This document shows positions 7,023-55,260 of a DNA stretch of 64,000 nt, one piece after another. Both the position numbers and the translations under genes were made by a program. Source of the stretch: Hypanus sabinus (lineage: Eukaryota); contig NC_082722.1 in assembly GCF_030144855.1 (NCBI RefSeq), forward strand, positions 21,328,001 to 21,392,000, written 5' to 3'. The notes below the pieces were generated by a model. It was not told the DNA's origin, did not search any database, and was given only the letters and a program-made list of their open reading frames with translations. Each line of letters starts with the position of its first letter. Position 1 is the first letter of the stretch.

Positions 7023-7102
7023 TTACTTATCTGATGTATAATTTGTATTTTGCTCTTTGGATGGTCGTTTTATAGCATAGTACCACAAGAATATATAAAA
7101 CC
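7023..7102 (-). CDS. adgrg3: Last coding exon (G)[25 protein letters not shown]-stop
   Basis: ctttgcag| acceptor, QG-F-Y-I-F-L-W end of TM7, TAA at 7023-7025. Confidence 0.92.
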
Positions 7103-22100: not shown

Positions 22101-25100
22101 ACAAAGTGTAGAAATCCACAGAGAACCAGCCACATGGTTCTACTGAGTTTGCATTCATCCCTCAATGCTCAGACCTTACCTGGAGTGAAACTATTCATCA
22201 GCCTTTTACAATCCCAATGAACCCAGAACATTTCTTATGGTCAAACCACCAAACAGGGTAGCGTTGCCTCAAGAACATATTTCACTGGGCTGGCTGGTAA
22301 AGTAACAGGATGGATAATGGAGAGTGATAATTGATTACAGATTATTAAATCAGGTCATTCCAGTGAATGGCCCAACAGTCTGCTGTAATAGACAGCAGAG
22401 AATCAGCAGTGACAAATATTCTCCAGGAAGAAATTCATTGGATCGAGTAGGTTCTGTTGGGACAAAGGACTGATGCAGCTATTAACTTTATCTGAGAAGT
22501 GAAAATGATTCCTGGGAAGGAAGATTCTCCTATGCTAAGGCACTCTGTGCAAGACTCATTAATTCAAAACTTGAGAGATAATCTCTTTGGGATGTGTGAA
22601 ATTCTGGAATGACATGCCATTGTAGAGGAAAACAACAAACTGCTACAACTGGGATTCCCAATGTTTATATGGCATGGACTCCTATCATTAACCGAAAGAT
22701 CCGCGGACCCCAGTTTGGGAACCCCTGTGGAAGAAGAACTCAGCAGATCAGGCAGTATCTGTGGAGGAAAATGGATAGTTGAAATGTTGGGTTGAGATCA
22801 TTTTGAACTGAAAAGGTACAGGGGAGATAGTTGATACAGAGGGGTGAGGGGAAGGGGTAGAGCAAAAGCTGGCAAGCAATAGGTGGGTCCAATTGAGATG
22901 AAGCAATTAGCACATGGAGGAGGCAAGAGTACATAAAACAGAGCTTGAAGGGAGCAGTTGATAGAATCTGACAGGAGAGGCAGGTGGAGCATAGAACTCA
23001 ATAAGGAAGGTGGGGAGGTCAGGTGGGAACAGTGGGGATGGGGAACCACTGGGAGGAGTGCGTACATGATGGGCAGATGGAGTGGACAGGGAAGAGGAAA
23101 AAAACAAGGTGAAAGGAGACAGGTGAGTGTAGAATAAAAACAAGTTTCCATCACTTTCTGATTTTATTCCAGATTTCAGAGAAACATCAGCAGTCTTTTT
23201 TTTATTTTAATTGGCAGCAGGAGTAACTGCTGGAAGTTGCATCTGGAGCAGTCCAGGAAGGAATTCCATGTGCTTATCTGATTTGTTAAAATTAATATTC
23301 CATTGATTAGAACTACAGCTCTCAAACAAAATAGTAAATGGTGCCTAACACACTCCTCAAGACTCCAATGTTTTTGTGAACATAATGATTTACTCTAGCA
23401 CAAAATGAGGACATTTGGCTATTGGGTAAATACTAACTCTCAAGGAAACAATGGTGGACACCGGGGTTATAAATAGTGGACTTACGCATGTGGGCTAATT
23501 GCAAATTAAAAACTGGCAACTTTCTTGGTTCCAAAGAAAGTGACTGAGCAGAAATATTAATTTCATGGATCTCTTCACAGGAAATGTCCCTCCTGTTGGC
23601 CAGTATTTTCTGATTTTATTTCTGCTTTCCACCACCTGCAGCATTGTGGTTTTTTGGTTCAGATCCAGACACTCTGGTTAAGGATTTGGGAACGAGAGAG
23701 GCCCAGAGTTTGCTGGGACTGTAGCAGCCATCTTTGGTCATGTTGTGCGACAGTGGGAGGAGATCAGTGTTAGAGTAAATCAATGATGATATGCTACATT
23801 ATAGGAAAGATTCAGCACCTTACATACATGGTCCCAGTTGGTGAGCAGATGGATCCCACCTGCCATCCAGAGCACCACTGACCTCACATGTTCTGCACCA
23901 TACACCAAAATGCCTGAGGTGGGATCTTACTGTACAAATATAGAGGTCATTTTCCCCAGAATGCAATCACTTTCAAAAGTATTTCATTCTGATTTACTTT
24001 GATAAAAATCTGTGGCTGAGAAAAGATATTCATAACAGCAAGTTACCTGAACTTTCCTGAATCTGTGAGTTGGTATTCATCATTAATTTGGTTAAAAGGG
24101 AAATGGAACTGAAAGGATTCAAAGCGGTGAAAGATTCTCATGATGTTAAAAATTTAAGTTACTGACCTTGGCACTCCGTCTTCATACATTGATATATGCA
24201 ACAAATACCTGCAGAGACAGAATTAAAGAGTCAATGTTATGGTGTTAGTGCAGCGATTATGGCCCAAGTGCAGAGGGAGAGACACTGAAGCTGATGAATA
24301 GTTCACTGACATAATAAGGCTACAAACAGCTAAAGGAAAAACAATAAATGCTCAGCCAATAGGTCTATTAACCAAAACTCACAAACTGAAAGCTAATGCT
24401 GACATTGCAATGAATTAATGACTTAATACTAAATGAATACTGCTCCTTTACAGTGTCAGTCAAGCAGTAGACTTCTTTCCCAGAACAAGGACAGAGGTAA
24501 GCAGGGAGCATAGACTTTGCTGTGCTTTTGGTAAAGTCTCAACAAGACTGGAATGAGAGGCAGGGAGTTAAATACCACCACAATGAAACACTAATTGGCT
24601 GGAACTTGCATATTCACGAGGGTGATTGTTGAACCCATTTCACAATCCACTTGTGCAGGTACAGAGACCCTGCAAGAGAGTCCATGGTTTCAACAGGGTC
24701 CCCCTCCCTTGGCGCAGTTCTCAAGGTGCTAGAGACCTGTCCCTGCTGCATTTAAAGGGGGACATGCCAGTGGCAATAACTGGAGGTGATTTTGGGCAAT
24801 CACTCCCCAACTAATTGGGAGCTCCCAGGATATAGAGATGAAAGAGAGAAGGAAGTGCAGGGATGTCTCCAGCTTCTGATTCACTCTCTCAATCTGTCCA
24901 TTAGACTGGGTGTGGAAACCCGATGGGAGGCTGGCTGTAATTCCCAGAAGATTACAGAAGGCCTTCACAAAACTGTGGTCCTTGATCAGACACTCTAACC
25001 ATGTGGGTAGCAGTCACACAAGCCAACGGAAGCTTTGGGAGAGCAATGAAGTGGGCAGCCTTGGAGAATTGATCCACAACCACCAGAACATTAATGTTTC

Positions 25101-28100
25101 CATCAGAGGGGTTCAAACTAGTGATGAAAACCACCGAGAGTTGGGACCAGTGGCTGTGAGACACAGGTTGCAGACACAGAAAACCTGCTGAAGGGTTTTG
25201 ACCAGAAACATTGACTGTACTCTTTTCAATAACTACTGCCTGGTCTGATGAGTTCTTCCAGCATTTTATGTGCGATAGCAACCAATAGGTTTGATAGGTA
25301 CATTTAATGTCCTTGGATTGTATACAATATATATCGTGACATTCTTTTTCTTTGCAAACATCCACAAAAAACAAAGGAGTGCCCCAAAGAATGAATGACA
25401 GTTAAACGTTAGAACCCCAAAGCCCCCCCTCCCCACAGCTCCCTTTCCAACGCACGAGCAGCAGCAAGGCAACGACCCCTCCCCCACCAGCAAATAGCGT
25501 CAGCGCCCTCCATGGAGCACTGGAGTATGCAGCAAGCATCAATAAAGACACAGACTTGCAGTACCCCAAAGACTACTCGTTCACCTGGTAATTCCACATA
25601 CCACAGGCTCTCTCTCTCCCTAATAAGGGAAAAAGAGAAGACCCTGTTTCACAGCGAGAGGGGAGACATAACAAACAACTCGCTGATTTACGATATTAAA
25701 AGTCTGTTGTCTTGTTTATTCTGAGTTCGGCTCCCAGAGAGTCGGCCCCAGGAAAGTGCAGATCTCTGGACACACATCCATGGCAGCTAACCCACTGCCC
25801 CCAATGTTCCATGTTCTCCCACGATGTTACTGTCAGGGGCACCGGCCTAGAATCTGCAGTCTACAGACCCATGAAAATCTGAAATCCTGAAGGCATGCTA
25901 ATATTCCAGGCCGTGTCGTTAGGATATCAAAAAGCGGCCGGTCATGAGACCGAGAGCAGGTCCATTCCTGCAAAGAACTGAAGTCAGAGTGTAACTCCAG
26001 GTCAGGGTCTTCAAAAGAACCTTGAAAATCAAAAAAACAATTAAAATAGAGCTGTTTCCAAAGATGCAAGCAAGGGGTCGCCGTTTACCACCATCTTGAC
26101 GTATGCAGGCATGACGTCAAGGGTGCAGCTGGTTTTCCGCAGTTGGGAGAGTACAACTCTCATAATGACATCTGATGCATCTATCTTGACACTGAATGGC
26201 CAGGATGGGTCTGGGTGTTGCAGCACTGGGGCAGTGGTAAAGCGTTATTTTATCTCTGAGGATGCTCGATCTGCTTCACTTGTCCAATGGAATCCTGCAA
26301 AGGACTTCTTGGTGAGTGCAGTTATGGGGGCTGTGATGGAACTGAAGTTTCTAATGAAGCAGCAATAAGTTAGCAAAGCCCCATGAAGCGCTGCACCTGT
26401 TTGACTGCAGATGGTTTGTGCCACTCTGTGACTGTCATGGGTCCATTTGAACACTGGAAGGGGTGAGTATATAATCCAAAAACGACATCTGCTCTTTATG
26501 CAACTCACACTTCCCTGGTTTACCTTAAAGGTCATTCTCAAGGAGTCATCTGATAATCCTTTGGGCATGCTGGATGTGTTCCTGGCGAACATGGGAATAG
26601 ATAAGAGTATAATCCAAATACACAAGCACAAATAGATTCAACATGTCTCAGAGCACATTGTTGACCAGGACCTGAAAAACAGCAGGGCAGAGAAAGAGCT
26701 TGCCATTGAACTTACTCCCAAAAGAGAAGCTGCCCTCTGCAGGCAAGTTTGAGGGATGGGTAAATCCTAAGACCAATGCCTCCTTTATGTATTCTTCCAT
26801 GGCCTGCATTTCTGGATGAAAGAGGGGAAAGAGCCATCCCTGGGCAGGACTAATACCAGCTAAGAGGTCAATGGCACAGTTGTATGGCTGGTGTGGTGAG
26901 AGGAAGATGGCTGTCCTCTTATTGAAGACTTCAAGAATGTTAACATATTCAGCCAGAACAACAGACAGGTCCACAGTAGCAGTTGGCATAGAAGGGAGCA
27001 GGGTGACAGGGGCTTGAGCTGGACCTAGAAAGTTAGACATGTCAATGCCCACTCTTGGAGCGCCTTTAGGGACCAATTGATCTATTGTGGGTCAAAATAG
27101 CTAAAGAAGGCCAAACGCCAGCGGCAGTTCATGTAAATCACCAAGCTAGAAGGAGACCTGTTGACTATGTCCAGTGGCCCTGACCTCAGACATCATGAAA
27201 ACCCAAGAAAAGTTGGTTCTGGCTCACCTCTGACCCCTGGTTATCTTCCACAAGCACAGAGTCAACAATGCTGTCATCTACCTGTTGAATAGAGCTTATT
27301 CCCATTTGGATAAGCAGGGTACTACTGTGAGGATCATTTTTTAAAATTTCTCAAATGTCTTCAATACCATACAGCCCTCATTGCTGAGGGGGGGGGGGAG
27401 GGCGGGAGGGTGGGAGGGTGGAAGCTCCATTCATTGCAGATTGGCACCAATTTTATCCTGGATAATGGACTACCTGACTGGCAGACCACATTTTGTGCAG
27501 CTTCAGAGCTGTGTATCAGACATGGCTATAAGCAGCACTGAGACCCATCAGGGGATCATATTGGCTCCCTTCCTGCTTACCCTGTATACCTTGGACTTTA
27601 GATATAACACTGAGTCATGTCATCTGTAGAAATTCCCTGACGTCTCAGCAATAGTTAGGTGTATAAAGAGAGGATGGCAGATGAATACAGGGCCCTAGTG
27701 GTGGAATTTGTCAAATGGTGCAAACTGATTATCAGTAAGGCAAAGGAGAAGGTGATGGATTTTGGGATCACTAAACCTGTACTACTCTCTGTTACTGTTG
27801 ATGGGGAGGATGTGGATGTGGTGAGGACCACAAGTAACTGGGGCTACACCAGGATGACAGGCTTGAGTGGAGCACCAACACAGAGGCTATATACAGGAAG
27901 AGTCAGAGTCGCCTCTACTTCCTGAGGAGACAGAGGTTCTTTGGAGTATGCAGGCATCTCCTTCACATGTTCTACTAGCCTGTTGTCGCTAGTTCAGTAT
28001 TCTATGCGGTGGTGTGCTGGGTGATGCCAACAGGCTAAATAGACTGATTAGAAAGGCTGGCTCTGTTATAGGAGTTAAAATGAACACACTTGAGGCTGTG

Positions 28101-31100
28101 GTAGGAAAAAGTATCCTACGGAAAATCCTGGTAATTCTGGACAATGTTTCTGGACAAAAGTGGATCTTGCTGGAGCCCAGAGGTTGTCCAGCCAGAGCCA
28201 TAACATTGATATTCTCTCTCGATTGCTGAATTAGAACTCTACGTCACTGAGTCAGAGAGATATCCATGAGGTTCCCAGCTGCCTCAGACACAAAAATTGC
28301 CTGAACCTCATGGTCTGGGATGCCCACAACAAGGAAGCTAGGAGCATTCTGTAGTTAGGGGAAGATGCTTGCAGGGAACACTAATTGGCTGGAATGTGTA
28401 TACTCATGATTGCTGAACCAATTCTGCAGCCCGCCAGCGAGAGAGCACAAACTCTCTGGCAGTAGTTGTGACAGCAGCACTGTGACTCATTGGGAGGGTC
28501 ATGGATGTCCAGTTGCTACGTAGATTAAGTTCACAAACTGTACCGGGGGATGTGGGGAAAAGAAAGGAAGTCTGGCATTGAGCTGGATGGTCAATGATGA
28601 TCTCAATTACAGGCAGAACATGGTTTGGGGAGGAGTAGACTTCCCCTGTTGCTCACACTCCGTTTTCAATACATTCTATGTTGTACAGCAAGTACCCATG
28701 TGTGCTGTCAGGTGAGGTGTCCTGGGACTGAACTTGTATTTGGTTCTGTTTAAATTCAATTCTTGCAATTGCAGAGCACAATACACATTTTTATAAAGCT
28801 ACCAAATTTTTGGAATTGTTCGGCGTATCAAAAGATTGTGAGAGCTCATTTGCTCTAAATATTCAACGTACAATATAAGCACGAGTTTAGATTTCAGCAG
28901 AACAGGATATATAGGTAGTAGTCAAACCTAGTATTGAGATCAAACATCAGCTAGGTCTCACTGATTGTTAGGAGAGTCCCAAAGTGAGGAGCAAGCTTTT
29001 CCTACTCCTAATACTTAGTCCTTTCTTTTCTACGTTGTACATCAGGTACCCACCGACACTGAAGTAATCCTGTGTTTCCACTCAAGGATAAGTGTGGCAT
29101 TGTTTTGACCTTTAACCACATCCAACATCATATACAATGGGTTTGAAAAAATGCACCCAACAGGCACAGGCAGGTCTGTCACTGTGTTACACTGGGCACA
29201 GTACCAGTGGACAATCTGTTGTACATCACTTGGGCATCGGACTGGTGAAAACAAATCAATCTTTAAATTCGGATTCACTACGGATGGACATGGGTTGTTG
29301 CTGTATAACAAGTGTATCCAGTACTGGTAAGTACAGGTTAGAATCTGTACACAAACAAGACAAAATCTGCAGATGCTGGAAAACAAAACAAAACACACAA
29401 AATGCTGGAAGAGCTCAGCAGACCAGGCTGTACCTAAGGAAATGGGTAAACAATTGACGTTTCGGGCTGAGACCCTCCATCAGGACCCTGAAGTAGTTTA
29501 AATCTTTCTGATTCAGAATCTGTACGATACAGATATACAGTATTGACGAATCTGGTTCCATTAGATAATGTGTACGAGCTATCACTGTATATAACTAGGT
29601 ACAGTATTGACGAATCTGGTTCCATTACATAATGTGTACAAACTATCACTGTATATAGCTAGGTACAGTTCAGGGAGATTCTGATGAACATCAAGTACGT
29701 TTCAGGATTCATTTAAGGAAGCAGGGTGGAAAAACAATGGGAATGTCAATAAAAGGATGATCAAGAGAGACATCTGAGTGAGGATGTTGAAGGTTTGCTA
29801 ATCCTTTCTCCTCCTTATCGCTGACATTTCCTTTGTTCCCCAACCATCAGGGAAGTGGCTGACAAGTGGCAAATAGATTTCATCAGAGTTAACTGCGAGG
29901 TTATGTATTTTAAGGGGCACATGGGTATGGATGTACCCTTCAAAAGGAGTCACACAATCAGCTTAGGAAGCACCCTCAACTGCAAGCAGCCTGGATCTGT
30001 GAATGTTCACCTTGACAAATACATTGTGAATGACTGGGTCTCTGTATATCATTGCATTGTGGGAATTCAGTTACTCATACATACAGTGCACAAATCAATA
30101 AGAAAAAATATCTCAGCAGAGCCAGCGAATATGTGAGAATGACACATGTATTGAGGTCAGGAACCAGCTATGACCTCACTAGATGTGAAAAAAAGAAGTA
30201 AGCTTCTCCTGCTCCTAATTCTTTTCTATGTTGTACATCAAGTACCCACTGACACTGAACTAATCCTGTCTTTCCACTCAAGGATGAGTGTGGCATTGCT
30301 TTATCCTTTATCCACATCTAACATCATAGACGATGGGTTTCAAACAATGCACACAACAGGCACAAACAGGTCTGTCACTGTATTACACTGGCCACAGTAC
30401 CAGTGGACAATCTGTTGTACGTCACTTGGGAACCAGACTGGTAGAAACAAATCAATCTCTAAACGCAGATACACTGCGAACAGACATGGGTTGTTGCTGT
30501 ATGACAGGTGTATCCCGTACCGGTGAGTACAGGTCAGAATCTGTACGCAAACAAGAGAAAATCTGAAGATGCTGGAAAAGAAAACAACACAGACAAAATG
30601 CTGGAGGATCTCCACAGCCCAGGCCGCACCTATGGAAACGAGTAAACTGTTGATATTTCAGGCTGAGACCCTTCATCAGGACCCTGAAGATGTTTAAATC
30701 TTTCTGACTCAGAATCTATACAACACAAATGTACAGTATTGATGAATGTAGATCTGGTTCCATTAGATAATGTGTACACAAACTAAGTTCTGGGAGTTTC
30801 TGGTGAACTTCAAATAAGTTTCAGTGAAGGAAGTAGGGTAGAAAAACGATCCGAATGTCAATAAAGGGCTGAACAAGGGAGACAGCTGAGTGAGGATTGT
30901 GAAGGTTTGGAAATCGCTGACATTCCCTTTGTTCTCACAAGCACCAGGGAAGCATACTGACGAGTGGCAAATGGATTTCATCAGAGTTAACTGCAAGGTG
31001 ATCTATTTTGGAAAGTCAAAGAAGTGTCGGACTTTTAGTAATAATTGTAACGACCTGGACTACCAGACCAAACACCCAAACTTGAACGCAAATCTCACAT

Positions 31101-34100
31101 TACAGCAGTGGATTAACATGCAGTCAATACTTAAAGATGATATCAAAACTTAGTAAGATGTAACTCAATGCTATTGGTTTTACCATGAAAGAACATGACT
31201 GAGCTGAAACACTAATCCCATGTCTCTTCCTTCATAAACATTACAGCTCCTGCTAATCATTGCCACCATTTTCTGTTTTTATTTCAGATTGGCAGCATCA
31301 TCAGCATTGTGAAATTTGGTGTGTGTGGTGAACTACGTGTGCCTGTCTGGACATGCCCCCTGCTGACTGCTCCTGTGGCTCCTCCCACAGGCCCCTGTAT
31401 AAAGGCGATCTGAGGCCTGGTGCTCGGCCTCAGTCTCCAGGACTTAGTATGATGGTCACTCACTCCTGGTTACTTCTTCCAGTCAATAAAAGCCGATATC
31501 TCGCCTTACGTCTCAGAGTGAGTTATTGATGGTGCATCAGTGTTGATCCGGACACTCTGGTCACGGAGTTGGGAAGGAGAGGGGCCCAGAGTTTGCTGGG
31601 TCAGTGTCAGCCATCTTTGCTCATGGAGAGAGACAGTGGGAGAAGATAGCTAGTGGGATCAGTGGTGGAGGAAAGCACTGAGGACATGGTGCATCATATA
31701 ACCATATAACAATTACAGCACAGAAACAGGCCATCTCGGCCCTTCTAGTCCGTGCTGAACGCTTACTCTCACATAGTCCCACTGACCTGCACTAAGCCCA
31801 TAATCCTCCAATCCTTTCCTGTCCATACACCTATCCTTTTTATTAAATGAAAGTATCAATCCTGCCTCTGCCACTTCTAATGGTAGCTCGTTCCACACAG
31901 CTACAACTCTCTGAGTAAAGAAGTTCTCCCTCATGTTACCCCTAAATTTTTACCCCTTAACTCTTAACTCATGTCCTCTTGTTTGAACTCCTGTACTCTC
32001 AATGGAAAAAGCTATTCAAGTCAACTCTATCTATCCCGCTCATCATTTTTGATACCTCTATCAGGCCCCCCTCAACCTACTATGCTCCAAAGAATAAAGA
32101 CCTAACTTGTTCAACCTTCCTCTGTATCTTAGGTGCTGAAACCCAGGTAACATTCTAGTAAATGTACTCTCTCTATTTTGTTGACATCTTTATTATAATT
32201 CGCTGACCAGAACTGTACACGATACTCCAAAGTTGGCCTCACCAATGTCTTGTACAATTTTAACATTACATCCCAAATCCTATACTCATTGCTCTGAATT
32301 ATAAAAGCTAGCATACCAAAAGTTTTCTTCACTACCTATCCACATCAGATCCCACCTTCGGGGAACTATGCACCATTATTCCTAGATCACTCTGGTCTAC
32401 TGCATTCCTCAATGCCCTACCATTTACCATGTATGTCCTATTTTGATTAGTCCCACCAAAATGCAACACCTCACACTTATCAGCATTAAACTCATCTGCC
32501 ATTTTTTAGCCCACTCTTCTAACTGGCCTAAATCTTTCTGCAGGCTTTGAAAACCTACTTCATTATCCACAACACCACCTATCTTAGTATCATCTGCATA
32601 CTTACTAATCCAATTTACCACCCCATCATGGGTAAGATTCAGTCACCTCACACACATGGTCACAGCTGGTGATCAGTTTGTAGGAACCCACCTGACAACC
32701 AGAGCACCACTGGCCTCACACTCTGTCTGGACCATGCACCATAATGCCCGAGGTGGGATCTTACTGCACAGATATACGTCATTTTCTATCTACATTGCAA
32801 TCACTTACAAATGATTTCACTCTGATTTACTTTATGTAAACATGTAGCTTGGGAAAGAGGTAAAGATTTGCAAGTTTGTGAACTCTGAACGTTTTCTCAA
32901 TGTACATATTGGTATTTCCCATCGATTTTGTAAAAAGGAAAATTTTCACATAGCTGGAACTTCTTCCTGATATTGAAAATGAAATAACTGCCTTTCACTT
33001 GTTTACATTTGGCTTTGCAACTCTTCCCTGCAGAGAATAAAAAGAAAGAATCACTGTTTAGAGTTGTTCCAGCACTATCAATCCTTTCCTTTCCCCTTTA
33101 AGAGCAGGTTTATTTATTGATTACATCACATTATTACAAGTCTACAATATTTCACCTTTCACGCTATTTACAAGTTAATAGATTGCAATTAAAAATCTCT
33201 TATCTCAATCCAGAATTTATTTGGGATTTGTGACAGCCATCAGACCCAGAAGCTGCCCAATTAGACATGGATGTCACATTTTTCTTTTTAAGGGGCACAT
33301 GGGTATGGACACACACTTCAAAAGGGGGCACGCAATCAGCTTGGAAAACACCCTCAACTGCAAGCTGCCTGGATCTGTGAATGTTCACCTTGACCACTAC
33401 GTTGTGAATGCCTGGGTCTCTGTGTAACATTGCATTGTGGGAATTCAGTTACTCATGCATACAATGTGCAAATCCATGAGAATTTATATCTCAGCAGAGC
33501 CAGCGAATATGTGAGAAGGGGATTGTGGTGAACTACATATACCTGTCTGGACACGCCCATCCCCCCCCCCCCCCCCCCCCCGCTGACTGCTCCTGTGGCT
33601 CCTCCCACAGACCCTTGTATAAAGGTGATTGGAGGCACTCCTCCTCCCTCAGTCTCCAGGATGTTGTGTGCTGGTCTCTTGCTGTTGACAGTGCTTTCTT
33701 CCAGCTAAAAAAAGCCTATCTCGCCTCACATCTCTGAGAGTTATGGATGATGCATCAGGGATGCAAGTTGGTATTGTCAGGAACCAGTAATGACCTCACT
33801 GAACGTTAAAGTGAGGAGTAAGCTTCTCCTGCTCCTAATTCTTTTCTAAGTTGTACATCAAGTACACACTGACACTGAGGTAATTCTGTGTTTCCACTCA
33901 AGGATGACTGTGGCATTGTTTTATCCTTTATCAACATCTAACATCATAGACGATCGGTTTCAAACAATGCACCCAACAGGCACAGGCAGGTCTGTCACTG
34001 TGTTACACTGGGCACAGAACCAGTGGACAATCTGTTGTACGTCACTTTGGGCACCAGACTGGTGGAAACAAATCAATCTCTAAACTCGCATGCACTGCGA

Positions 34101-37100
34101 ACGGACATGGGTTGTTGCTGTATAACAGGTGTATCCCGTACTGGTGAGTACAGGTCAGAATCTGTACGCAAACAAGAGAAAATCTGAAGATGCTGGAAAA
34201 GAAAACAACACAGACAAAATGCTGGAGGATCTCCGCACCCCAGGCCGCACCTATGGAAACGAGTAAACAGTCGATGTTTCAGGCTGAGACCCTTCATCAG
34301 GAACCTGAAGATGTTTAAATCTTTCTGACTCAGAACCTGTAAAACACAGGTGTACAGTATTGATGAATGTAGATCTGGTTCCGTTAGATAATGTGTACAC
34401 AAACTATCACTGTATATAACTCAGTACAGTTCTGGGAGGTTCTGATGAACTTCAAATATGTTTCAGTGAAGGAAGTAGGGTGGAAAAACAATCCGAATGT
34501 CAATAAAGGGCTGATCAAGGGAGACTGCTGAGTGAGGATTGTGAAGGTTTGGTAATCTCATTCTCTTCTCTATCGCTGACATTCCCTTTGTTCTCACAAG
34601 CACCAGGGAAGCGTACTGACGAGTGGCAAATGGATTTCATCACAGTAAACTGCAAGGTGATCTATTTTGGAAAGTCAAAGATGTGTCAGACTTTTAGTAA
34701 TAATTGTAACGACCTGGACTGCTTGACCAAACACCCAAACTTGAATGCAAATCTCACATAACAGCTGTGGATTAACATGCAGTCAATATTTAAAGTTGAT
34801 ATCAAAATGTAGAAAGATGTAATTCAATGCTATTTGTTTTCACCACGAAGAACATGACTGAGCTGAAATACTAATCCCATGTTTCTTCCATCACAAACAT
34901 TCCAGCTCCTGCTACTCATTGCCAGCATTTTGTTTTTATTTCAGATTGGCAGCATCATCAGCATTGTGAAATTTGGTCTGGATCCGGACACTCTGGTCAC
35001 GGAGTTGGGAAGAAGAGCGGCCCAGAGTTTGCTGGGTCTGTGGCAGCCATCCTTGGTCACGTTGAGAGACAGTGGGAGAAGATTGCTCGCGGGATCAGTG
35101 GTGGAGGAAAGCACTGAGGTCATGGTGCATCATGGGTAAGATTCAGTCACCTCACACACACACGGTCACAGTTGGTGAGCAGTTTGTAGGATCCCATCTG
35201 CCAACCAGAGCACCACTGGATCACGCTGTGTCTGGAGCATGTATCATAATGTCTGAGGTGGGATTTGACTGCACAGATACACGTCATTTGCATCCACATT
35301 GCAATCACTTACAAGTGATTTCACTCTGGTTTATTTTAGCTAAACATGTCGCTTAGAAAAGTGGTAAAGATTTGCAAGAATCGTGAACTGAGCACATTTT
35401 CTCAACGGACACATTGGTATTTCCTAACTATTCAGTTAAAAAGGAAAATTTTCAAATAGCTGGAATTTCTTCCTGATATTAAAAGTAAAATAACTGACCT
35501 TTGTCTTTCACCTGTTTACATTCGGCTTTGCAACTCTTCCCTGCAAGAATTATAAGAAAGAATCACTGTTTAGAGTTGTTACAGCACTATCAATCCTTTC
35601 CTTTCCCCTTTAAAAGCCAGTTTATTTATTGATTACATCACATTATTACGTCTACAATATTTCACCTTTCACACTATTTACAAGTTAATAGATTGCAATT
35701 AAAAATCTCTTATGTCAATCCAGAATTTAACTGTTACCCTGTGACAGCCATCAGACCCAGAAGCTGCCCAATGTAGACATGGATGTCACATTTTTCTTTT
35801 TAAGGGGCACATGGGTATGGACACACACTTCAAAAGGGGCCACGCAATCAGCTTGGAAAACACCCTCAACTGCAAGCTGCCTGGATCTGTGAATGTTCAC
35901 CTTGACCACTACTTTGTGAATGCCTGGGTCTCGGTGTAACATTGCATTGTGGGAATTCAGTTACTCGTACATACAATGTGCAAATCCATGAGAATTTATA
36001 TCTCAGCAGAGCCAGCGAATATGTGAGAAGGGGACTCAAGTTGGTATTGAGGTCAGGAACCAGTTATGACCTCACTGAATGTTAAAGTGAGGAGTACGCT
36101 TCTCCTGCTCCTAATTGTTTTCTATGTTGTACATCAAGTACCCACCAACACTGAATTCTGTGTTTCCACCCAAGGATGAGTGTGGCATTGTTTTGTCCAT
36201 TATCTACTTCTAACATCATAGACGATCGGTTTCAAACAATGCAGCCAACAGGCACAGGCAGGTCTGTCACTGTGTTACACTGGGCACAGAATCAGTGGAC
36301 AATCTGTTGTACGTCACTTAGGGCACCAGACTGGTGGAAACAAATCAATCTTTAAACTCGGATGCACTACAGAAGGACATTTGTTGTTGCTGTATAACAG
36401 GTGTATCCCGTACTGGTGAGTACAGGTCAGAATCTGTACACAAACAGGAGAACATCTACAGATGCTGGAAAACAAAGCAACACACATAAAATGCTGAAGG
36501 AGCTCAGCAGGCCAGGCTGCATCTATGTCAATGAGTAAACTGTTGATATTTCGGGCTCATCACAGTTAACTGCGAGGTGATCTACTTTGGAAAGTCAAAG
36601 AAGAGTCGGACATTTAGTATCAATGGTAACGACCTGGACTGCCAGACCAAACACCCAAACTTGAATGCAAATCTCACATAACAGCTGTGGATTAACATGC
36701 AGTCAATATTTAAAGATGATATCAAAATGTAGTAAGATGTAACTCAATGCTATTGGTTTTACCATGAATGAACATGACTGAGCTGAAATACTAATCCCAT
36801 GTTTCTTCCTTCATAAACATTCCAGCTCCTGCTACTCATTGCCAGCATTTTGTTTTTATTTCAGATTGGCAGCATCATCAGCTTTATGAAATTTGGTCTG
36901 GATCCGGACACCCTGGTCACGGAGTTGGGAAGGAGAGGGGTCCAGAGTTTGCTGGGTCTGTGGCAGCCATCCTTGGTCACGTTGAGAGACAGTGGGAGAA
37001 GATTGCTCGTGGGATCAGTGGTGGAGGAAAGCACTGAGGACATGGTGCATCATGGGTAAGATTCAGTCACCTCACACACATGGTCACAGTTGGTGAGCAG

Positions 37101-40100
37101 TTTGTAGGATCCCACCTGACAACCAGAGCACAACTGGATCACGCTGTGTCTGGACCATGTATCATAATGTCTGAGGTGGGATTTGACTGCACAGATACAC
37201 GTCATTTGCATCCACATTGCAATCACTTACAAGTGATTTCACTCTGGTTTATTTTAGCTAAACATGTCGCTTAGAAAAGTGGTAAAGATTTGCAAGAATC
37301 GTGAACTGAGCACATTTTCTCAACGGACACATTGGTATTTCCTATCTATTCAGTTAAAAAGGAAAATTTTCAAATAGCTGGAATTTCTTCCTGATATTAA
37401 AAGTAAAATAACTGACCTTTGTCTTTCAACTGTTTACAATCGTCTTGGCAACTCTTCCCTGCAAGAATTATAAGAAAGAATCACTGTTTAGAGTTGTTAC
37501 AACACTATCAATCCTTTCCTTTCCCCTTTAAAAGCCAGTTTATTTATTGATTACATCACATTATTACAAGTCTACAATATTTCACCTTTCACACTACTTA
37601 CAAGTTAATAAAATGCAATTAAAAATCTCTTATGTCAATCCAGAATTTAACTGTTACCCTGTGACAGCCATCAGACCCAGAAGCTGCCCAATGTAGACAT
37701 GGATGTCACATTTTTCTTTTTAAGGGGCACATGGGTATGGACACACACTTCAAAAGGGGCCACGCAATCAGCTTGGAAAACACCCTCAACTGCACGCTGC
37801 CTGGATCTGTGTATGTTCACCTTGACCACTACTTTGTGAATGCCTGGGTCTCGGTGTAACATTGCATTGTGGGAATTCAGTTACTCGTACATACAATGTG
37901 CAAATCCATGAGAATTTATATCTCAGCAGAGCCAGCGAATATGTGAGAAGGGGACTCAAGTTGGTATTGAGGTCAGGAACCAGTTATGACCTCACTGAAT
38001 GTTAAAGTGAGGAGTAAGCTTCTCCTGCTCCTAATTGTTTTCTATGTTGTACATCAAGTACCCACCAACACTGAATTCTGTGCTTCCACCCAAGGATGAG
38101 TGTGGCATTGTTTTGTCCATTATCTACTTCTAACATCATAGACGATCGGTTTCAAACAATGCAGCCAACAGGCACAGGCAGGTCTGTCACTGTGTTACAC
38201 TGGGCACAGAATCAGTGGACAATCTGTTGTACGTCACTTAGGGCACCAGACTGGTGGAAACAAATCAATCTTTAAACTCGGATGCACTACAGAAGGACAT
38301 TTGTTGTTGCTGTATAACAGGTGTATCCCGTACTGGTGAGTACAGGTCAGAATCTGTACACAAACAGGAGAACATCTACAGATGCTGGAAAACAAAGCAA
38401 CACACATAAAATGCTGAAGGAGCTCAGCAGGCCAGGCTGCATCTATGTCAATGAGTAAACTGTTGATATTTCGGGCTCATCACAGTTAACTGCGAGGTGA
38501 TCTACTTTGGAAAGTCAAAGAAGAGTCGGACATTTAGTATCAATGGTAACGACCTGGACTGCCAGACCAAACACCCAAACTTGAATGCAAATCTCACATA
38601 ACAGCTGTGGATTAACATGCAGTCAATATTTAAAGATGATATCAAAATGTAGTAAGATGTAACTCAATGCTATTGGTTTTACCATGAATGAACATGACTG
38701 AGCTGAAATACTAATCCCATGTTTCTTCCTTCATAAACATTCCAGCTCCTGCTACTCATTGCCAGCATTTTGTTTTTATTTCAGATTGGCAGCATCATCA
38801 GCTTTATGAAATTTGGTCTGGATCCGGACACCCTGGTCACGGAGTTGGGAAGGAGAGGGGTCCAGAGTTTGCTGGGTCTGTGGCAGCCATCCTTGGTCAC
38901 GTTGAGAGACAGTGGGAGAAGATTGCTCGTGGGATCAGTGGTGGAGGAAAGCACTGAGGACATGGTGCATCATGGGTAAGATTCAGTCACCTCACACACA
39001 TGGTCACAGTTGGTGAGCAGTTTGTAGGATCCCACCTGACAACCAGAGCACAACTGGATCACGCTGTGTCTGGACCATGTATCATAATGTCTGAGGTGGG
39101 ATTTGACTGCACAGATACACGTCATTTGCATCCACATTGCAATCACTTACAAGTGATTTCACTCTGGTTTATTTTAGCTAAACATGTCGCTTAGAAAAGT
39201 GGTAAAGATTTGCAAGAATCGTGAACTGAGCACATTTTCTCAACGGACACATTGGTATTTCCTATCTATTCAGTTAAAAAGGAAAATTTTCAAATAGCTG
39301 GAATTTCTTCCTGATATTAAAAGTAAAATAACTGACCTTTGTCTTTCAACTGTTTACAATCGTCTTGGCAACTCTTCCCTGCAAGAATTATAAGAAAGAA
39401 TCACTGTTTAGAGTTGTTACAACACTATCAATCCTTTCCTTTCCCCTTTAAAAGCCAGTTTATTTATTGATTACATCACATTATTACAAGTCTACAATAT
39501 TTCACCTTTCACACTACTTACAAGTTAATAAAATGCAATTAAAAATCTCTTATGTCAATCCAGAATTTAACTGTTACCCTGTGACAGCCATCAGACCCAG
39601 AAGCTGCCCAATGTAGACATGGATGTCACATTTTTCTTTTTAAGGGGCACATGGGTATGGACACACACTTCAAAAGGGGCCACGCAATCAGCTTGGAAAA
39701 CACCCTCAACTGCACGCTGCCTGGATCTGTGTATGTTCACCTTGACCACTACTTTGTGAATGCCTGGGTCTCGGTGTAACATTGCATTGTGGGAATTCAG
39801 TTACTCGTACATACAATGTGCAAATCCATGAGAATTTATATCTCAGCAGAGCCAGCGAATATGTGAGAAGGGGACTCAAGTTGGTATTGAGGTCAGGAAC
39901 CAGTTATGACCTCACTGAATGTTAAAGTGAGGAGTAAGCTTCTCCTGCTCCTAATTGTTTTCTATGTTGTACATCAAGTACCCACCAACACTGAATTCTG
40001 TGCTTCCACCCAAGGATGAGTGTGGCATTGTTTTGTCCATTATCTACTTCTAACATCATAGACGATCGGTTTCAAACAATGCAGCCAACAGGCACAGGCA

Positions 40101-43100
40101 GGTCTGTCACTGTGTTACACTGGGCACAGAATCAGTGGACAATCTGTTGTACGTCACTTAGGGCACCAGACTGGTGGAAACAAATCAATCTTTAAACTCG
40201 GATGCACTACAGAAGGACATTTGTTGTTGCTGTATAACAGGTGTATCCCGTACTGGTGAGTACAGGTCAGAATCTGTACACAAACAGGAGAACATCTACA
40301 GATGCTGGAAAACAAAGCAACACACATAAAATGCTGAAGGAGCTCAGCAGGCCAGGCTGCATCTATGTCAATGAGTAAACTGTTGATATTTCGGGCTCAT
40401 CACAGTTAACTGCGAGGTGATCTACTTTGGAAAGTCAAAGAAGAGTCGGACATTTAGTATCAATGGTAACGACCTGGACTGCCAGACCAAACACCCAAAC
40501 TTGAATGCAAATCTCACATAACAGCTGTGGATTAACATGCAGTCAATATTTAAAGATGATATCAAAATGTAGTAAGATGTAACTCAATGCTATTGGTTTT
40601 ACCATGAATGAACATGACTGAGCTGAAATACTAATCCCATGTTTCTTCCTTCATAAACATTCCAGCTCCTGCTACTCATTGCCAGCATTTTGTTTTTATT
40701 TCAGATTTGCAGCATCATCAGCATTGTGAAATTTGGTCTGGATCCGGACACTCTGGTCACGGAGTTGGGAAGGAGAGAGGCCCAGAGTTTGCTGGGTCTG
40801 TGGCAGCCATCCTTGGTCACGTTGAGAGACAGTGGGAGAAGATTGCTCGTGGGATCAGTGGTGGAGGAAAGCACTGAGGACATGGTGCATCATGGGTAAG
40901 ATTCAGTCACCTCACACACATGGTCACAGTTGGTGAGCAGTTTGTAGGATCCCACCTGACAACCAGAGCACAACTGGATCACGCTGTGTCTGGACCACGT
41001 ATCATAATGTCTGAGGTGGGATTTGACTGCACAGATACACGTCATTTGCATCCACATTGCAATCACTTACAAGTGATTTCACTCTGGTTTATTTTAGCTA
41101 AACATGTCGCTTAGAAAAGTGGTAAAGATTTGCAAGAATCGTGAACTGAGCACATTTTCTCAACGGACACATTGGTATTTCCTAACTATTCAGTTAAAAA
41201 GGAAAATTTTCAAATAGCTGGAATTTCTTCCTGATATTAAAAGTAAAATAACTGACCTTTGTCTTTCAACTGTTTACAATCGTCTTGGCAACTCTTCCCT
41301 GCAAGAATTATAAGAAAGAATCACTGTTTAGAGTTGTTACAACACTATCAATCCTTTCCTTTCCCCTTTAAAAGCCAGTTTATTTATTGATTACATCACA
41401 TTATTACAAGTCTACAATATTTCACCTTTCACACTACTTACAAGTTAATAGATTGCAATTAAAAATCTCTTATGTCAATCCAGAATTTAACTGTTACCCT
41501 GTGACAGCCATCAGACCCAGAAGCTGCCCAATGTAGACATGGATGTCACATTTTTCTTTTTAAGGGGCACATGGGTATGGACACACACTTCAAAAGGGGC
41601 CACGCAATCAGCTTGGAAAACACCCTCAACTGCACGCTGCCTGGATCTGTGAATGTTCACCTTGACCACTACTTTGTGAATGCCTGGGTCTCGGTGTAAC
41701 ATTGCATTGTGGGAATTCAGTTACTCGTACATACAATGTGCAAATCCATGAGAATTTATATCTCAGCAGAGCCAGCGAATATGTGAGAAGGGGACTCAAG
41801 TTGGTATTGAGGTCAGGAACCAGTTATGACCTCACTGAATGTTAAAGTGAGGAGTAAGCTTCTCCTGCTCCTAATTGTTTTCTATGTTGTACATCAAGTA
41901 CCCACCAACACTGAATTCTGTGTTTCCACCCAAGGATGAGTGTGGCATTGTTTTGTCCATTATCTACTTCTAACATCATAGACGATCGGTTTCAAACAAT
42001 GCAGCCAACAGGCACAGGCAGGTCTGTCACTGTGTTACACTGGGCACAGAATCAGTGGACAATCTGTTGTACGTCACTTAGGGCACCAGACTGGTGGAAA
42101 CAAATCAATCTTTAAACTCGGATGCACTACAGAAGGACATTTGTTGTTGCTGTATAACAGGTGTATCCCGTACTGGTGAGTACAGGTCAGAATCTGTACA
42201 CAAACAGGAGAACATCTACAGATGCTGGAAAACAAAGCAACACACATAAAATGCTGAAGGAGCTCAGCAGGCCAGGCTGCATCTATGTCAATGAGTAAAC
42301 TGTTGATATTTCGGGCTCATCACAGTTAACTGCGAGGTGATCTACTTTGGAAAGTCAAAGAAGAGTCGGACATTTAGTATCAATGGTAATGACCTGGACT
42401 GCCAGACCAAACACCCAAACTTGAATGCAAATCTCACATAACAGCTGTGGATTAACATGCAGTCAATATTTAAAGATGATATCAAAATGTAGTAAGATGT
42501 AACTCAATGCTATTGGTTTTACCATGAATGAACATGACTGAGCTGAAATACTAATCCCATGTATCTTCCTTCATAAACATTCCAGCTCCTGCTACTCATT
42601 GCCAGCATTTTGTTTTTATTTCAGATTTGCAGCATCATCAGCATTGTGAAATTTGGTCTGGATCCGGACACTCTGGTCACGGAGTTGGGAAGGAGAAAGG
42701 CCCAGAGTTTGCTGGGTCTGTGGCAGCCATCCTTGGTCACGTTGAGAGACAGTGGGAGAAGATTGCTCATGGCATCAGTGGTGGAGGAAAACACTGAGGA
42801 CATGGTGCATCATGGGTAAGATTCAGTCACCTCACACACACACGGTCACAGTTGGTGAGCAGTTTGTAGGATCCCACCTGCCAACCAGAGCACCACTGGA
42901 TCACGCTGTGTCTGGACCATGTATCATAATGTCTGAGGTGGGACTTGACTGCACAGATACCCGTCATTTGTATCCACATTGCAATCACTTACAAGTGATT
43001 TCACTGATTTACTTTAGGTAAACATGTAGCTTAGAAAAAAGGTAAAAATTTGCAAGAATTTTGAACTGTAAACATTTTCTTAATGTGCATATTGGTATTT

Positions 43101-51019: not shown

Positions 51020-54000
51020 CTAAACGTCAATCTCACAAACCACACATCTTCCCTCTTATTGCTTCCCAAAAGGTGTCTCCCCTGAACTGATGGAAACAGA
51101 TTGTAATACCACCTCCCTGACCCATTCCTATCATATAATTTCTACCATTTCCCAATCCCAGCCAACCTGATGCAAAATTTGGTTTCATACTTTCCCACAT
51201 TAACTATAATATCTACCTCTGACTTAATAAGTGTCTGTTTTTGCTATCACATCTTCTCTTTCATTACCTGATACACCCACTTGTGCAGGTCCCCCCCCAA
51301 AAAAAAAACTGTTCTACTATTCCCAAACTTTACAGAACATAAAAATATAGAACACTTGCATCAACAGATCAGGTCTACTTGAACACTTCAATTACAAACT
51401 CTGCAATATCGAGGCAGATTCTGAGTAGATCAGGACTCTATTTGGCTTAACTTCTTCGACCCTTTGCAAACTGATGCCATAAATTCTGCTATGCAGACAG
51501 ACAACCCATCTGTCAGCCTTTTCCCCACCTCAGCATTAAACCAGGGGATAAATATCCCAGAGCTCACCTGGTTACTAACTGGGTCTTTATACCATTTATA
51601 AAGACAGGCAAAAAGGAAAAATACTGCTGCCATAAATGACCAGACACCCTCTCACCACGCATGAGATCCTGTCTGTCTCCCAGTAACATCAAATCTACTC
51701 CCACATCAGGAAATTTCAATGGTGGAACTCCTAGCCAGGCTATAGTTGGGCTAATCTGCAAATCCCCAACACCATACTCCTGCAAGTATTCCCCAATTAT
51801 CTGCCCAAATCATTGACGAAACCTTTCAGCATTCCTAACAACTCTCCCTGCTATCACTCTTTTCTGAAACTTCAGCAAAGCTTCTTGCATTAACCTGTGT
51901 TTGAAAACACAAACTGCCTGTCTCCAGTCTCTGATGGGTTCTGTACATTCCCCTGTCCACCAAGGAACACATTTCTTACCAGCTCTCCAAGACACCAAAG
52001 GAATAGCTTGACGGGTGACCCCACGCAAACCAGAAATTATACTCTGATATTCTTCTTCTATGGTACCACCTAGAGACAATTAATTTCTCCCACTCAATGG
52101 AAAATTTGCCCCAGTTTTCCCTCTTAAAACACCATCTAGTACCTGAACTCAAATTCTAACAGTGAATCTTCAGCCCTACAATACATAAGACTGGGAAATG
52201 ATCACTCCCCACACAATCAGTCGTTACATCCCAACTCTGAAGTCCAGCAAGTGGAGCGGAGCTAAGAATCAAGTCCAGGCGCAAACTCCAGCTTTGGTGA
52301 TGTCTACACTTGTCTCTTTTCCATCATTTAAATCAAATTCTTCCAAAAACTATTACTGCCCCATTAGCATCTGTAGTCTTACCACTATGTGCATTAAAAT
52401 GATTTTGTCATAATAAGTTTCTACCATTCTTCTCAACCCTTCCACAAACAGCTTCAGACCTGGAATACAAAAGTTCACAATTTTGATCCAACGCTGTGGA
52501 TGTAACAGTTTAACAATTAAGCACTAAGTATTCTATGGAGAAGGCAGAATTTTGTGTAATAAACCCTCCTTCACAAAGGCGGCACAGAATCTCCTATTGC
52601 TCTAAGTCTATCATATTTCACAACCTCATAACGCAAAATCTTGAATGATAATGTGATCGCAACCACGTTTCTTGTACACAAATAACTTGCAGGGGATTAC
52701 CAAAACCTGAAACATATGCTTTAAATTCCTGTTCATTGTCTAACAAGCTTCGCTCATTCCAATGAAGAACTGTAAATTGATTGGAAAAGCACCCTGTATA
52801 CAATCACACTCCACCAGCAGCCCATTCCCTCTACTATCATACCCCAAATCTGCTCTCCTTTAGTACTTCATGTACCTGTTCTGCAGTAATTCCCACTAAT
52901 CCCAGATATCTTGATGCTGCATCCACCACCATTCTGAGTCTGTCAGATTTTGTTCCCACCTGTACTGTTCCACTTACCACAGCATAAAGAAATGGAAGAA
53001 AATCTAATTTTTAAGAATCAATACCTCACTAGATGTCTCACCTCCCACGCTCTCCGCCTGTACAATTTCATTTCGTGGTTTCCTCCATCTGGATCCCTAT
53101 GAGTGTCCGTTTTAACCTGACACACAAACTCCATTCCACACCATTACTTTAACTCCCCAACTTGTATTTTGCATGTCACAATTTCCCCCTGCAAGAAGCA
53201 ACAACATCTCCCGCTCGTTGTCATTGAAAACACAAGGTTGGAGGGTCATACATTCTGACCGAATAACTAATGCAGACTTAAGGAATTTTTGACAGTAGCA
53301 CTTCATCAGAGAAATACAACAGAACAAACTATCACATTTCCCCCTTCTCTCCAAGTCTGTATTCTGTTAAACAAAACTGCCTTTCCCCCTCTCAGGTTGT
53401 CTCCAATATACACACAGAGGTGCACCTGAAATAACACACCAAACCTTCATTTGTCCCCCTATCAATGTATTCTCTCGTTTTAAATCAAATCGACATATTG
53501 CTGACTTTGCTCTACCAATGTCCTTCTTAATACCCTTCTTCAATCTAACCGCGTTAAGATTTTTTGTCACAATTAGATATGAAATTCATTATCTTGAATT
53601 CGACATCATCTTCTGTTCCAGTCCTACTGCCCTTCAGCGGGCGACCCTCCTCATCCGAACCACCCTCACCCCCGACTCATGTTCGCTTTCTTTCTTGCCC
53701 AACTCCATTCCACACCAACTCCCCGCCATTGTCTTCCCTCAGTCACATCACATCAGGCGATGCAAACCGCGCGCCCCCGACTCTCGCACCAGCACTCCGC
53801 GGTTCCGGTCAAGGCGCGCACCCCGACACTCTAGCGCCAGCACTCCGCGGTTCCGGTCAAGGCGCGCGCCCCCGACACTCTCGTGCCAGCACTCCGCGGT
53901 TCTGGTCAATGCGCGCGCCCCCGACTCGCGCCAGCACTCCGCGGTTCCGGTCAAAGCGCGCGCCCACGACTCTCGCGCCAGCACTCCGCGGTTCCGGTCA

Positions 54001-55260
54001 AGGCGCGCGCCCCCGACTCTCGCGCCAGCACTCCGCGGTTCCGGTCAAAGCGCGCGCCCACGACTCTCGCGCCAGCACTCCGCGGTTCCGGTCAAGGCGC
54101 GCGCCCGGACTCTCGCGCCAGCACTCCGCGGTTCCGGTCAAGGCGCGCGCCCCCGACTCTCTCGTGCCAGCACTCCGCGGTTCCGGTCAAGGCGCGCACC
54201 CCGACACTCTAGCGCCAGCACTCCGCGGTTCCGGTCAAGGCGCGCGCCCCCGACACTCTCGCGCCAGCACTCCGCGGTTCCGGTCAAGGCGCGCGCCCCC
54301 GACTCTCGCGCCAGCACTCCGCGGTTCCGGTCAAAGCGCGCGCCCACGACTCTCGCGCCAGCACTCCGCGGTTCCGGTCAAGGCGCGCGCCCGGACTCTC
54401 GCGCCAGCACTCCGCGGTTCCGGTCAAGGCGCGCGCCCCCGACTCTCTCGTGCCAGCACTCCGCGGTTCCGGTCAAGGCGCGCACCCCGACACTCTAGCG
54501 CCAGCACTCCGCGGTTCCGGTCAAGGCGCGCGCCCCCGACACTCTCGCGCCAGCACTCCGCGGTTCCGGTCAAGGCGCGCGCCCCGACTCTCGCGCCAGC
54601 ACTCCGCGGTTCCGGTCAAGGCACGCGCCCCCGACTCTCGCGCCAGCACTCCGCGGTTCCGGTCAAAGCGCGCGCCCACGACTCTCGCGCCAGCACTCCG
54701 CGGTTCCGGTCAAGGCGCGCGCCCCCGACTCTCGCGCCAGCACTCCGCGGTTCCAGTCAAGGCGCGCGCCCCGACTCTCGCGCCAGCACTCCGCGGTTCC
54801 GGTCAAGGCACGCGCCCCCGACTCTCGCGCCAGCACTCCGCGGTTCCGGTCAAGGCGCGCGCCCCCGACTCTCGCGCCAGCACTCCGCGGTTCCGGTCAA
54901 GGCGCGCGCCCCGACTCTCGCGCCAGCACTCCGCGGTTCCGGTCAAGGCGCGCGCCCCCGACTCTCGCGCCAGCACTCCGCGGTTCCGGTCAAGGCGCGC
55001 ACCCCGAAACTCTCGCGTCAGCACTCCGCGGTTCCGGTCAAGGCGCGCGCCCGCGCCCTAGCCTTTCAGACGCTCCGATTCTGCGGCTGGATTCAGGGCT
55101 GCGCTCCCTCTGCTTTCTTCAACGATTCACCAGTCACATGCGCCTCCAAAACAGGCGAAAAGCAGCTCGGCGGGAACAGTCCTCGGTGAACTCGCAGTTA
55201 AAACACAAATGCTCGTCAATACGGTGACGCTCTGGAGAGAGCGCGCAGTCAACAGTCCGC
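51020..55260 (-). mobile_element. Highly degenerate Nimb/I-clade-like LINE (APE endonuclease; RT largely deleted)
   Basis: VLHWNERSLLDNEQEFK..VICVQETWL, VPWWTGEC; GC-rich putative 5' end near 55260. Confidence 0.65.
53768..55050. repeat. GC/CpG-rich minisatellite, about 27 copies of a ~47-bp unit
   Basis: Consensus GCACTCCGCGGTTCCGGTCAAGGCGCGCGCCCCCGACTCTCGCGCCA with small length variants. Confidence 0.97.

Follow-up and report, generated by a model that had tools for sequence, protein, structure and literature searches.

Does a stretch of stingray DNA hold a row of 42-nucleotide (nt) exons that builds the outermost tip of a receptor and, if so, are the copies being driven apart by selection? 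These questions are raised by a window of 64,000 nt from Hypanus sabinus (contig NC_082722.1, positions 21,328,001 to 21,392,000; "the window" denotes this whole stretch), in which closely similar 42-nt segments lie on the minus strand ahead of exons encoding a G-protein-coupled receptor (GPCR) of the adhesion type. An earlier note had read these segments as microexons whose copy-to-copy substitutions all change amino acids and are denser than those in the adjoining introns, and had proposed either diversifying selection on an exposed tip facing a ligand or pathogen, or short patches of gene conversion. The explanation that we prefer, with somewhat better than even confidence, is that these 42-nt units serve a receptor of the ADGRG subfamily as phase 1-1 cassette microexons for its extreme N-terminus and are weakly constrained and reshuffled. 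What is new here is the microexon-array context in an ADGRG-type receptor, with a recent duplication of units, dead copies at both edges, and counterparts in sharks and rays.

Candidate cassette exons at the tip of an adhesion receptor

Using a mismatch-tolerant search, six 42-nt copies were located, starting at positions 32986, 35499, 37417, 39337, 41257, and 43177, all on the minus strand. The tandem array is made up of units of about 1920 bp (34600-44650, strand not assigned), numbered U2 to U6, plus the remnant U7; the window holds no runs of N. The microexon of U2 (35499-35540) has a net charge of +3, that of U3 (37417-37458) of +1, and that of U6 (43177-43218), in which the splice sites are intact and the second Cys is replaced by Ser, of 0, so that the shift from basic to acidic described in the earlier note is roughly right and is better put as basic to neutral or acidic. 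The copies in U4 (39337-39378) and U5 (41257-41298) are identical to that in U3; over the full 1920 nt, U3 and U4 are themselves identical, and U5 differs from both at 12 sites. At one edge of the series, the minus-strand copy in U7 (44562-44603) is degenerate, with its acceptor changed from AG to TG, the second Cys lost, and the donor kept; at the other, U1 (32986-33027) is dead as an exon, its donor having been removed by a 7-nt deletion. An older paralogous microexon, also of 42 nt (24167-24208, minus strand), was picked up in the splice-site scan and has the same phase, a CxxxC motif, and intact splice sites; it is annotated in relatives as GMCCIYQCIKTECQG. Its flanks are about 66-70% identical to the array units over about 720 nt and the exon itself about 50%; copies as dissimilar as this still share the phase, the 42-nt length, and the codon of the first Cys.

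Each array microexon presents a single open frame between a pyrimidine-rich acceptor (cag/GG, with a slash marking exon borders here and below) and a donor (AG/gtcagt). The splice sites are competent in 35499, 37417, 39337, 41257, 43177, and 24167, and lost in 32986 (donor) and 44562 (acceptor). The microexons score 8.8-13.2 at the acceptor and 7.8-8.4 at the donor, inside the range of the confirmed exons of the receptor gene (6.7-11.4 for acceptors, where a clear site was found, and 5.0-11.8 for donors). Upstream lies coding exon 1 (45078-45159, minus strand), which encodes a signal peptide or anchor: from the ATG at 45159 it runs for 27 residues plus one extra nt (G) before gtaaga, thus ending in phase 1 at the donor G/gtaaga (score 8.9), and in tblastn comparisons it resembles the N-termini of two annotated stingray paralogues, P0001 and P0263, at 70-76% identity. 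The cassettes open with 2 nt (GG) and close with 1 nt (G), a phase 1-1 arrangement that keeps the frame at any copy number; the junction codon, G+GG, encodes Gly, and each cassette consists of Gly followed by 13 residues, which include a CxxxC motif and are mostly drawn from a set rich in charge or amide groups (Lys, Asp, Glu, and Gln). One reading frame links exon 1, the five splice-competent array copies, the 24167 exon, a 55-nt exon at 21119-21173 (minus strand; (G)+17 residues+(K), phase 1 to 2, with a weak donor GAA/gtatgt), the exon at 19209-19350, and the exons of the GAIN, GPS, and seven-transmembrane (7TM) domains. The array copies accordingly sit between an intact signal-peptide exon and the GAIN/GPS/7TM exons, which extend from 19350 down to 7026.

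The minus-strand candidate exons downstream of the array translate to an adhesion GPCR. Pfam 7tm_2 matched the window exons at 6.5e-17 and 3.2e-08, and GPS matched at 9e-11 (13929-14078), with the HL/T autoproteolysis site just before the first transmembrane segment read directly from the sequence. Relatives were collected in two rounds, a profile search run exhaustively from one 7TM exon and then a word search starting from its top match; the database matches, from stingrays, devil rays, sawfish, skates, and sharks, are named "adhesion G-protein coupled receptor G1/G2/G5-like". Among relatives with solved structures, those matching best are ADGRG6/G2/G3/G4/G1/G5, at 1e-55 to 1e-86, against 1e-21 to 1e-34 for ADGRL/E/D. 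By these sequence matches, the gene is an adhesion GPCR of the ADGRG subfamily on the minus strand, and the source names of relatives being inconsistent (G1-, G2-, G3-, and G5-like), the assignment is to subfamily G only. The annotated H. sabinus protein P0282 (XP_059849431.1), which itself matches 7tm_2 at 8.6e-38, is a 100% match to nearly all the window exons that it covers. These include the last N-terminal exon before the GAIN domain, ending in IANSSW (19209-19350; 100% to P0282). On the same minus strand follow two GAIN-domain exons identified by tblastn (18342-18482 and 17841-17960), the GPS exon with the cleavage motif CDHL/TFFAVLL (13962-14066), and the 7TM exons supported by Pfam 7tm_2 and tblastn (12329-12456, 11020-11288, ~10037-10140, ~7397-7674, and 7026-7103).

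Annotated proteins of sharks and rays carry CxxxC modules of 12-14 residues right after the signal peptide, in the same position as the array. In Hemitrygon akajei, P0001 has GKQTKDKCERRRVK and then GMCCIYQCIKTECQ, the counterpart of the 24167 exon; in Mobula hypostoma, P0161 has DMSCRKSCGADSDK and ETYCKEQCKKNEVK followed by five identical ETCCIEQCIENK; in Pristis pectinata, P0155 has 12-residue repeats of the CCNENRQKDKDK type; and in Chiloscyllium punctatum, P0279 has nine CxxxC motifs at a spacing of 13-15 residues. Homologous modules are also present in P0261 and P0263 (stingrays) and P0267 (Mobula). Isoforms differ in length by exactly 14 residues in Heterodontus and by 28 and 13 in Chiloscyllium punctatum, and such whole-module differences are what cassette splicing of exons of this kind would give. 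The N-terminal modules diverge far more between species than the GAIN and 7TM parts, and in the shark and ray relatives these N-terminal regions have no match to any Pfam family. In an AlphaFold2 model of the Mobula N-terminus, each 14-residue module forms one short helix, at low confidence (mean predicted local distance difference test score, 52). The terms "microexon" and "exposed tip" chosen in the earlier note are thus well supported by context, that is, by the position between signal peptide and GAIN domain and by the annotated CxxxC modules of rays and sharks.

Beyond the cartilaginous fishes, the notothenioid ADGRG5-like proteins P0226, P0223, and P0247 (Trematomus, Eleginops) have arrays several hundred residues long after the signal peptide, made up of short Gly/Ser/Asn-rich repeats of the GSN(K/T)GS(D/V)E type, with at least 47 annotated isoforms in Trematomus bernacchii. 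An N-terminal repeat array at this position may thus recur in a wider group of fish.

Several other features lie in and around the array. Every 1920-bp unit contains, on the plus strand, a fragment of the reverse transcriptase of a long interspersed nuclear element (LINE; 36540-36680 and equivalents; 42070-42457), over which the contig depth in relatives is hundreds to thousands of times the unique level. Plus-strand "exons" that look spliceable (36865-37056 and 35794-35938) were rejected, given that they have no Pfam match and that part of the unit is this LINE fragment; the minus-strand open reading frames (ORFs) of the array unit matched no Pfam family either. At 28950-31280, there are two partial older units 1196 bp apart, which lack the microexon segment and include a 64-bp tandem duplication (29536-29669) roughly at the expected place of the exon. 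On the minus strand at 24900-27100, in the intron that separates the 24167 exon from the array, there are retroelement pol-like ORFs, including an integrase-like piece. Upstream of the receptor gene, at 53768-55052, a 47-bp unit is repeated about 27 times in a GC-rich minisatellite that also shows higher-order periods of 140 and 286 bp.

Divergence between copies, selection, and gene conversion

The first rival explanation to be weighed is diversifying (positive) selection on the residues between and after the cassette cysteines, at a tip facing a ligand or pathogen, which we regard as possible but unlikely. A recount confirmed the differences on which this proposal was founded: 4 of 42 nt between copies 35499 and 37417 (K/Q, A/D, E/D, and V/L), 7 of 42 nt, in six codons, between copies 41257 and 43177, all nonsynonymous in both pairs, and about six events in some 320 nt around 35499 (in the 160 nt on each side of the exon, these are 35427, 35584, an indel at 35649, 35677, 35691, and 35693). 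One point for selection comes from the young pair, 35499/37417, in which the exon differs at 9.5% of its positions and the flank, taken as the recently shared 1.4 kb, at 16 of 1383 (1.16%; P = 0.0016 by a Poisson test and 0.002 by Fisher's); with the flank count of the earlier note (6 of 320), the Fisher P is 0.02. When a 42-nt window is slid along the flank, only 2 of 1301 placements reach four changes, both in a cluster at 35196-35238, and with uniform placement of the changes the probability that some window reaches four is 0.21; the excess thus counts only because the exon was a unit defined in advance. The older pair, 41257/43177, weighs against selection, given that its exon (16.7%) shows no excess over its flanks (16.5%; P = 0.54). 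The claim that changes are denser in the exon than in the flanks therefore holds for the young pair but not for the older one, whose exon divergence lies within the intron distribution.

When all six copies are placed on a tree, the exon has accumulated 0.71 steps per site against 0.48 in the flank (P 0.02-0.03), which again favors selection, and the exon's count is reached by 7-8% of flank windows; once the oldest copy is removed, however, the values are 0.31 and 0.20 and P rises to 0.11. The ratio of exon to intron rate is thus about 8-fold in the young pair, 1.0 in the older pair, and about 1.5 tree-wide (P 0.02-0.11). Two further observations speak for selection, namely that the old 24167 copy is less similar to the array in its exon than in its flanks and that the N-terminal modules are so much more diverged between species than the GAIN/7TM parts. 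Relaxed constraint alone, however, gives a ratio near 1, which is compatible with most of these comparisons.

That every difference in the two pairs is nonsynonymous, as the earlier note had stressed, is true but uninformative. The codons are almost all those of K, D, E, Q, and C, which leaves only 5-9 synonymous sites among the 39 coding ones, the figure varying with the assumed transition bias. Under neutrality, four changes would all be nonsynonymous with a probability of 0.34-0.57, and seven with one of 0.15-0.38; the lack of silent changes is accounted for by this codon make-up. One synonymous difference (CAA/CAG) is carried by copy 32986. With dS (synonymous divergence) equal to 0 on 5-9 sites, the ratio of nonsynonymous to synonymous divergence (dN/dS) is undefined, which counts against this reading. 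In a codon-table tally of the changes among U2, U3, and U6 (35499, 37417, and 43177), eight of nine fall at first or second codon positions and one at the third (binomial P ~0.14, not significant), and four residues occur at codon 6 (N in relatives; K, E, and D in the window), both of which lean toward selection; on the other side, the sole change seen in relatives, a C>T at 41281 that turns codon 6 from Asp to Asn, is a transition at a CpG.

The four differences of the young pair also appear to have more than one origin. Two of them, at 35511 and 35521, are substitutions new in the young trio of identical copies, and the other two, at 35525 and 35529 (5 nt apart), split 32986 and 35499 from 37417 and 43177, contradicting the flank tree; half of the differences thus resemble a patch brought in from another unit more than fresh mutations, a further point against selection. 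In a comparison of four copies, 29 sites back the flank tree and 3+2 conflict with it, with 3 and 7 singletons on the young branches; five conflicting sites were seen against about one estimated by chance, these being small numbers. Furthermore, the contig of one relative appears to contain a 55-nt patch of the 43177 type inside a unit of the 41257 type, in register and at the same depth (joints 41465>43389 and 43443>41522), with the proviso, from the tool's own warning, that contig joints at low likeness can be repeat artefacts. The suggestion of short gene-conversion patches therefore gains some support, on small counts.

Taken as a claim of selection, the copy-to-copy changes, which are real but small, are only suggestive: the exon evolves at or above the rate of the intron, but the older pair has no excess and the codon ratio is undefined. 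In the wider form of this idea, which we likewise consider improbable, the ADGRG5-like receptors of sharks and rays would carry such an array at the N-terminal end, and selection would keep its copy number, its splicing, and the residues between the cysteines diverse. The outcome would be a recognition or tether tip, encoded in the germline and varying combinatorially, on a mechanosensitive receptor; the stingray array would be a snapshot of this process, combining three new units identical to one another with older ones of shifted charge and dead copies at the edges.

In the weakly constrained, reshuffled cassettes that we prefer, the 1.92-kb units would have multiplied recently by unequal crossing-over and would swap short patches through gene conversion. 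Constraint would be slight outside the splice sites, the KSC start, and the first and, in most cases, the second Cys, and with coding constraint so weak, the cassette would evolve no more slowly than the intron. The 35499/37417 differences would then comprise the two young-trio substitutions plus a two-site patch common to older neighboring units. Within the N-terminal fragment, the tip would be a part of varying length and charge that tethers the receptor or contacts its ligand. The general view of adhesion GPCRs is that force on this fragment activates them.

Evidence on the use of the copies as exons

The second rival holds that the array copies are not used as exons at all and are neutral DNA in a long first intron or upstream region, with the cluster of four differences reflecting chance or a conversion patch. 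We doubt this explanation, although a series of results stands on its side and against cassette exons. A search of sequencing runs gave none recorded as RNA that contained the array stretch, and the contigs over 41100-46900 show no splice joints at the microexon borders, behaving instead as genomic DNA would, from three related organisms at about 2% divergence; the one run guessed as RNA gave only low-depth intronic contigs, none of them over the microexons. Neither the RefSeq model of this gene nor that of its nearest H. akajei relative takes in exon 1 or the array, both beginning further downstream: the ATG of P0282 falls within the 24167 exon but in a different frame (MYEDGVP...), and this exon also supplies the initial Met of the H. 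akajei model, P0151, whose exons are each 88-100% identical. An N-terminal search found no annotated protein with the array, the N-terminal 75 residues of P0001 retrieving only P0001. The exon is never more conserved than the introns, as a non-exon would also look, and three of the edge copies are already broken or degenerate (the U7 acceptor, the U1 donor, and the U6 Cys). Finally, about six unrelated pseudo-exons of 27-60 nt elsewhere in the window score equally well by a simple splice-site score, which makes splice-like sites alone weak proof.

Against neutral DNA stand the intact ATG, signal peptide, and donor of exon 1, the preservation of frame at every link, and the survival of phase, length, and first Cys codon in copies as diverged as 50%. 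Moreover, the homologous 24167 exon is inside annotated coding sequences, and cassettes of this kind are used by paralogues and by other species. Its start inside the 24167 exon, together with the skipping of the intact 55-nt exon at 21119-21173, leaves the P0282 model devoid of a signal peptide; probably, the annotation is truncated or in the wrong frame, or the isoform is non-productive. Near-identical 1.9-kb repeats hamper short-read mapping, which could possibly explain the truncated gene models.

That the identical units are an assembly artefact, which would make the comparison of copies meaningless, is very improbable: U3 equals U4 over 1920 nt and the spacing is exactly 1920, but the informative pairs (U2/U3 and U5/U6) are distinct sequences and the summed contig depth over the unit, a weak measure, is several-fold that of the unique flanks in three relatives.

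Comparison with known systems

In its 7tm_2 core, its HL/T GPS motif, and its short GAIN region, the receptor resembles ADGRG5 (GPR114), ADGRG3 (GPR97), and other ADGRG proteins, as it does in its total length of about 500-600 residues and its short N-terminus. An N-terminal array of CxxxC microexons is not described for the ADGRG subfamily in the literature found by our search. The N-terminal tips of the ADGRE receptors are built from tandem exons, one module each, used in variable numbers. The ADGRE group (EMR/CD97) offers a parallel in kind, being likewise composed of adhesion GPCRs whose tip comes from tandem one-module exons in variable number; CD97 is described in a passage of PMC8191316 as having between 3 and 5 domains of the epidermal growth factor (EGF) kind. 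The present modules differ in having 14 residues and two Cys, against about 45-50 residues and six Cys in EGF, and in belonging to another receptor subfamily.

Short tandem exons that keep the frame and occur in variable number are also found in the human IGHG3 hinge, in the copies of TRGC2 exon 2, and in the stalk repeats of FCER2 (CD23); such exons lengthen an extracellular stalk or hinge, and those of the IGHG3 hinge carry Cys. The proteins, unit sizes, and sequences all differ from those of the array, and no homology is claimed. With respect to rate, the exons of snake venom phospholipase A2 (PLA2) and of the Schistosoma micro-exon genes diverge as fast as or faster than their introns, and the latter genes use symmetric microexons combinatorially. 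In comparison with these systems, the effect here is weak (about 1.5-fold overall), has no codon-test backing, and concerns a receptor tip rather than a secreted toxin or parasite protein.

With respect to structure, CxxxC motifs about 9-16 residues apart could pair neighboring helices by two disulfides in the manner of the twin CX3C helix-loop-helix of the small Tim proteins. This is pure analogy: the small Tim proteins are mitochondrial and the tip is extracellular, there is no sequence relation, and the structure model obtained here is unreliable. That neighboring CxxxC motifs of the array pair by disulfides is thus our speculation.

The partners of G-subfamily adhesion GPCRs with a short N-terminus are poorly known, and such receptors are thought to be activated via the N-terminal fragment. 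The CxxxC cassette tip appears to have been amplified differently in each lineage examined, namely stingrays, devil rays, sawfish, and horn and bamboo sharks. Cassettes of 14 residues that can be duplicated and skipped would amount to an experiment of nature in tuning a receptor of this type through the length, charge, and disulfide content of its tether, and the array would offer a clean case of exon birth and death by unequal crossing-over.

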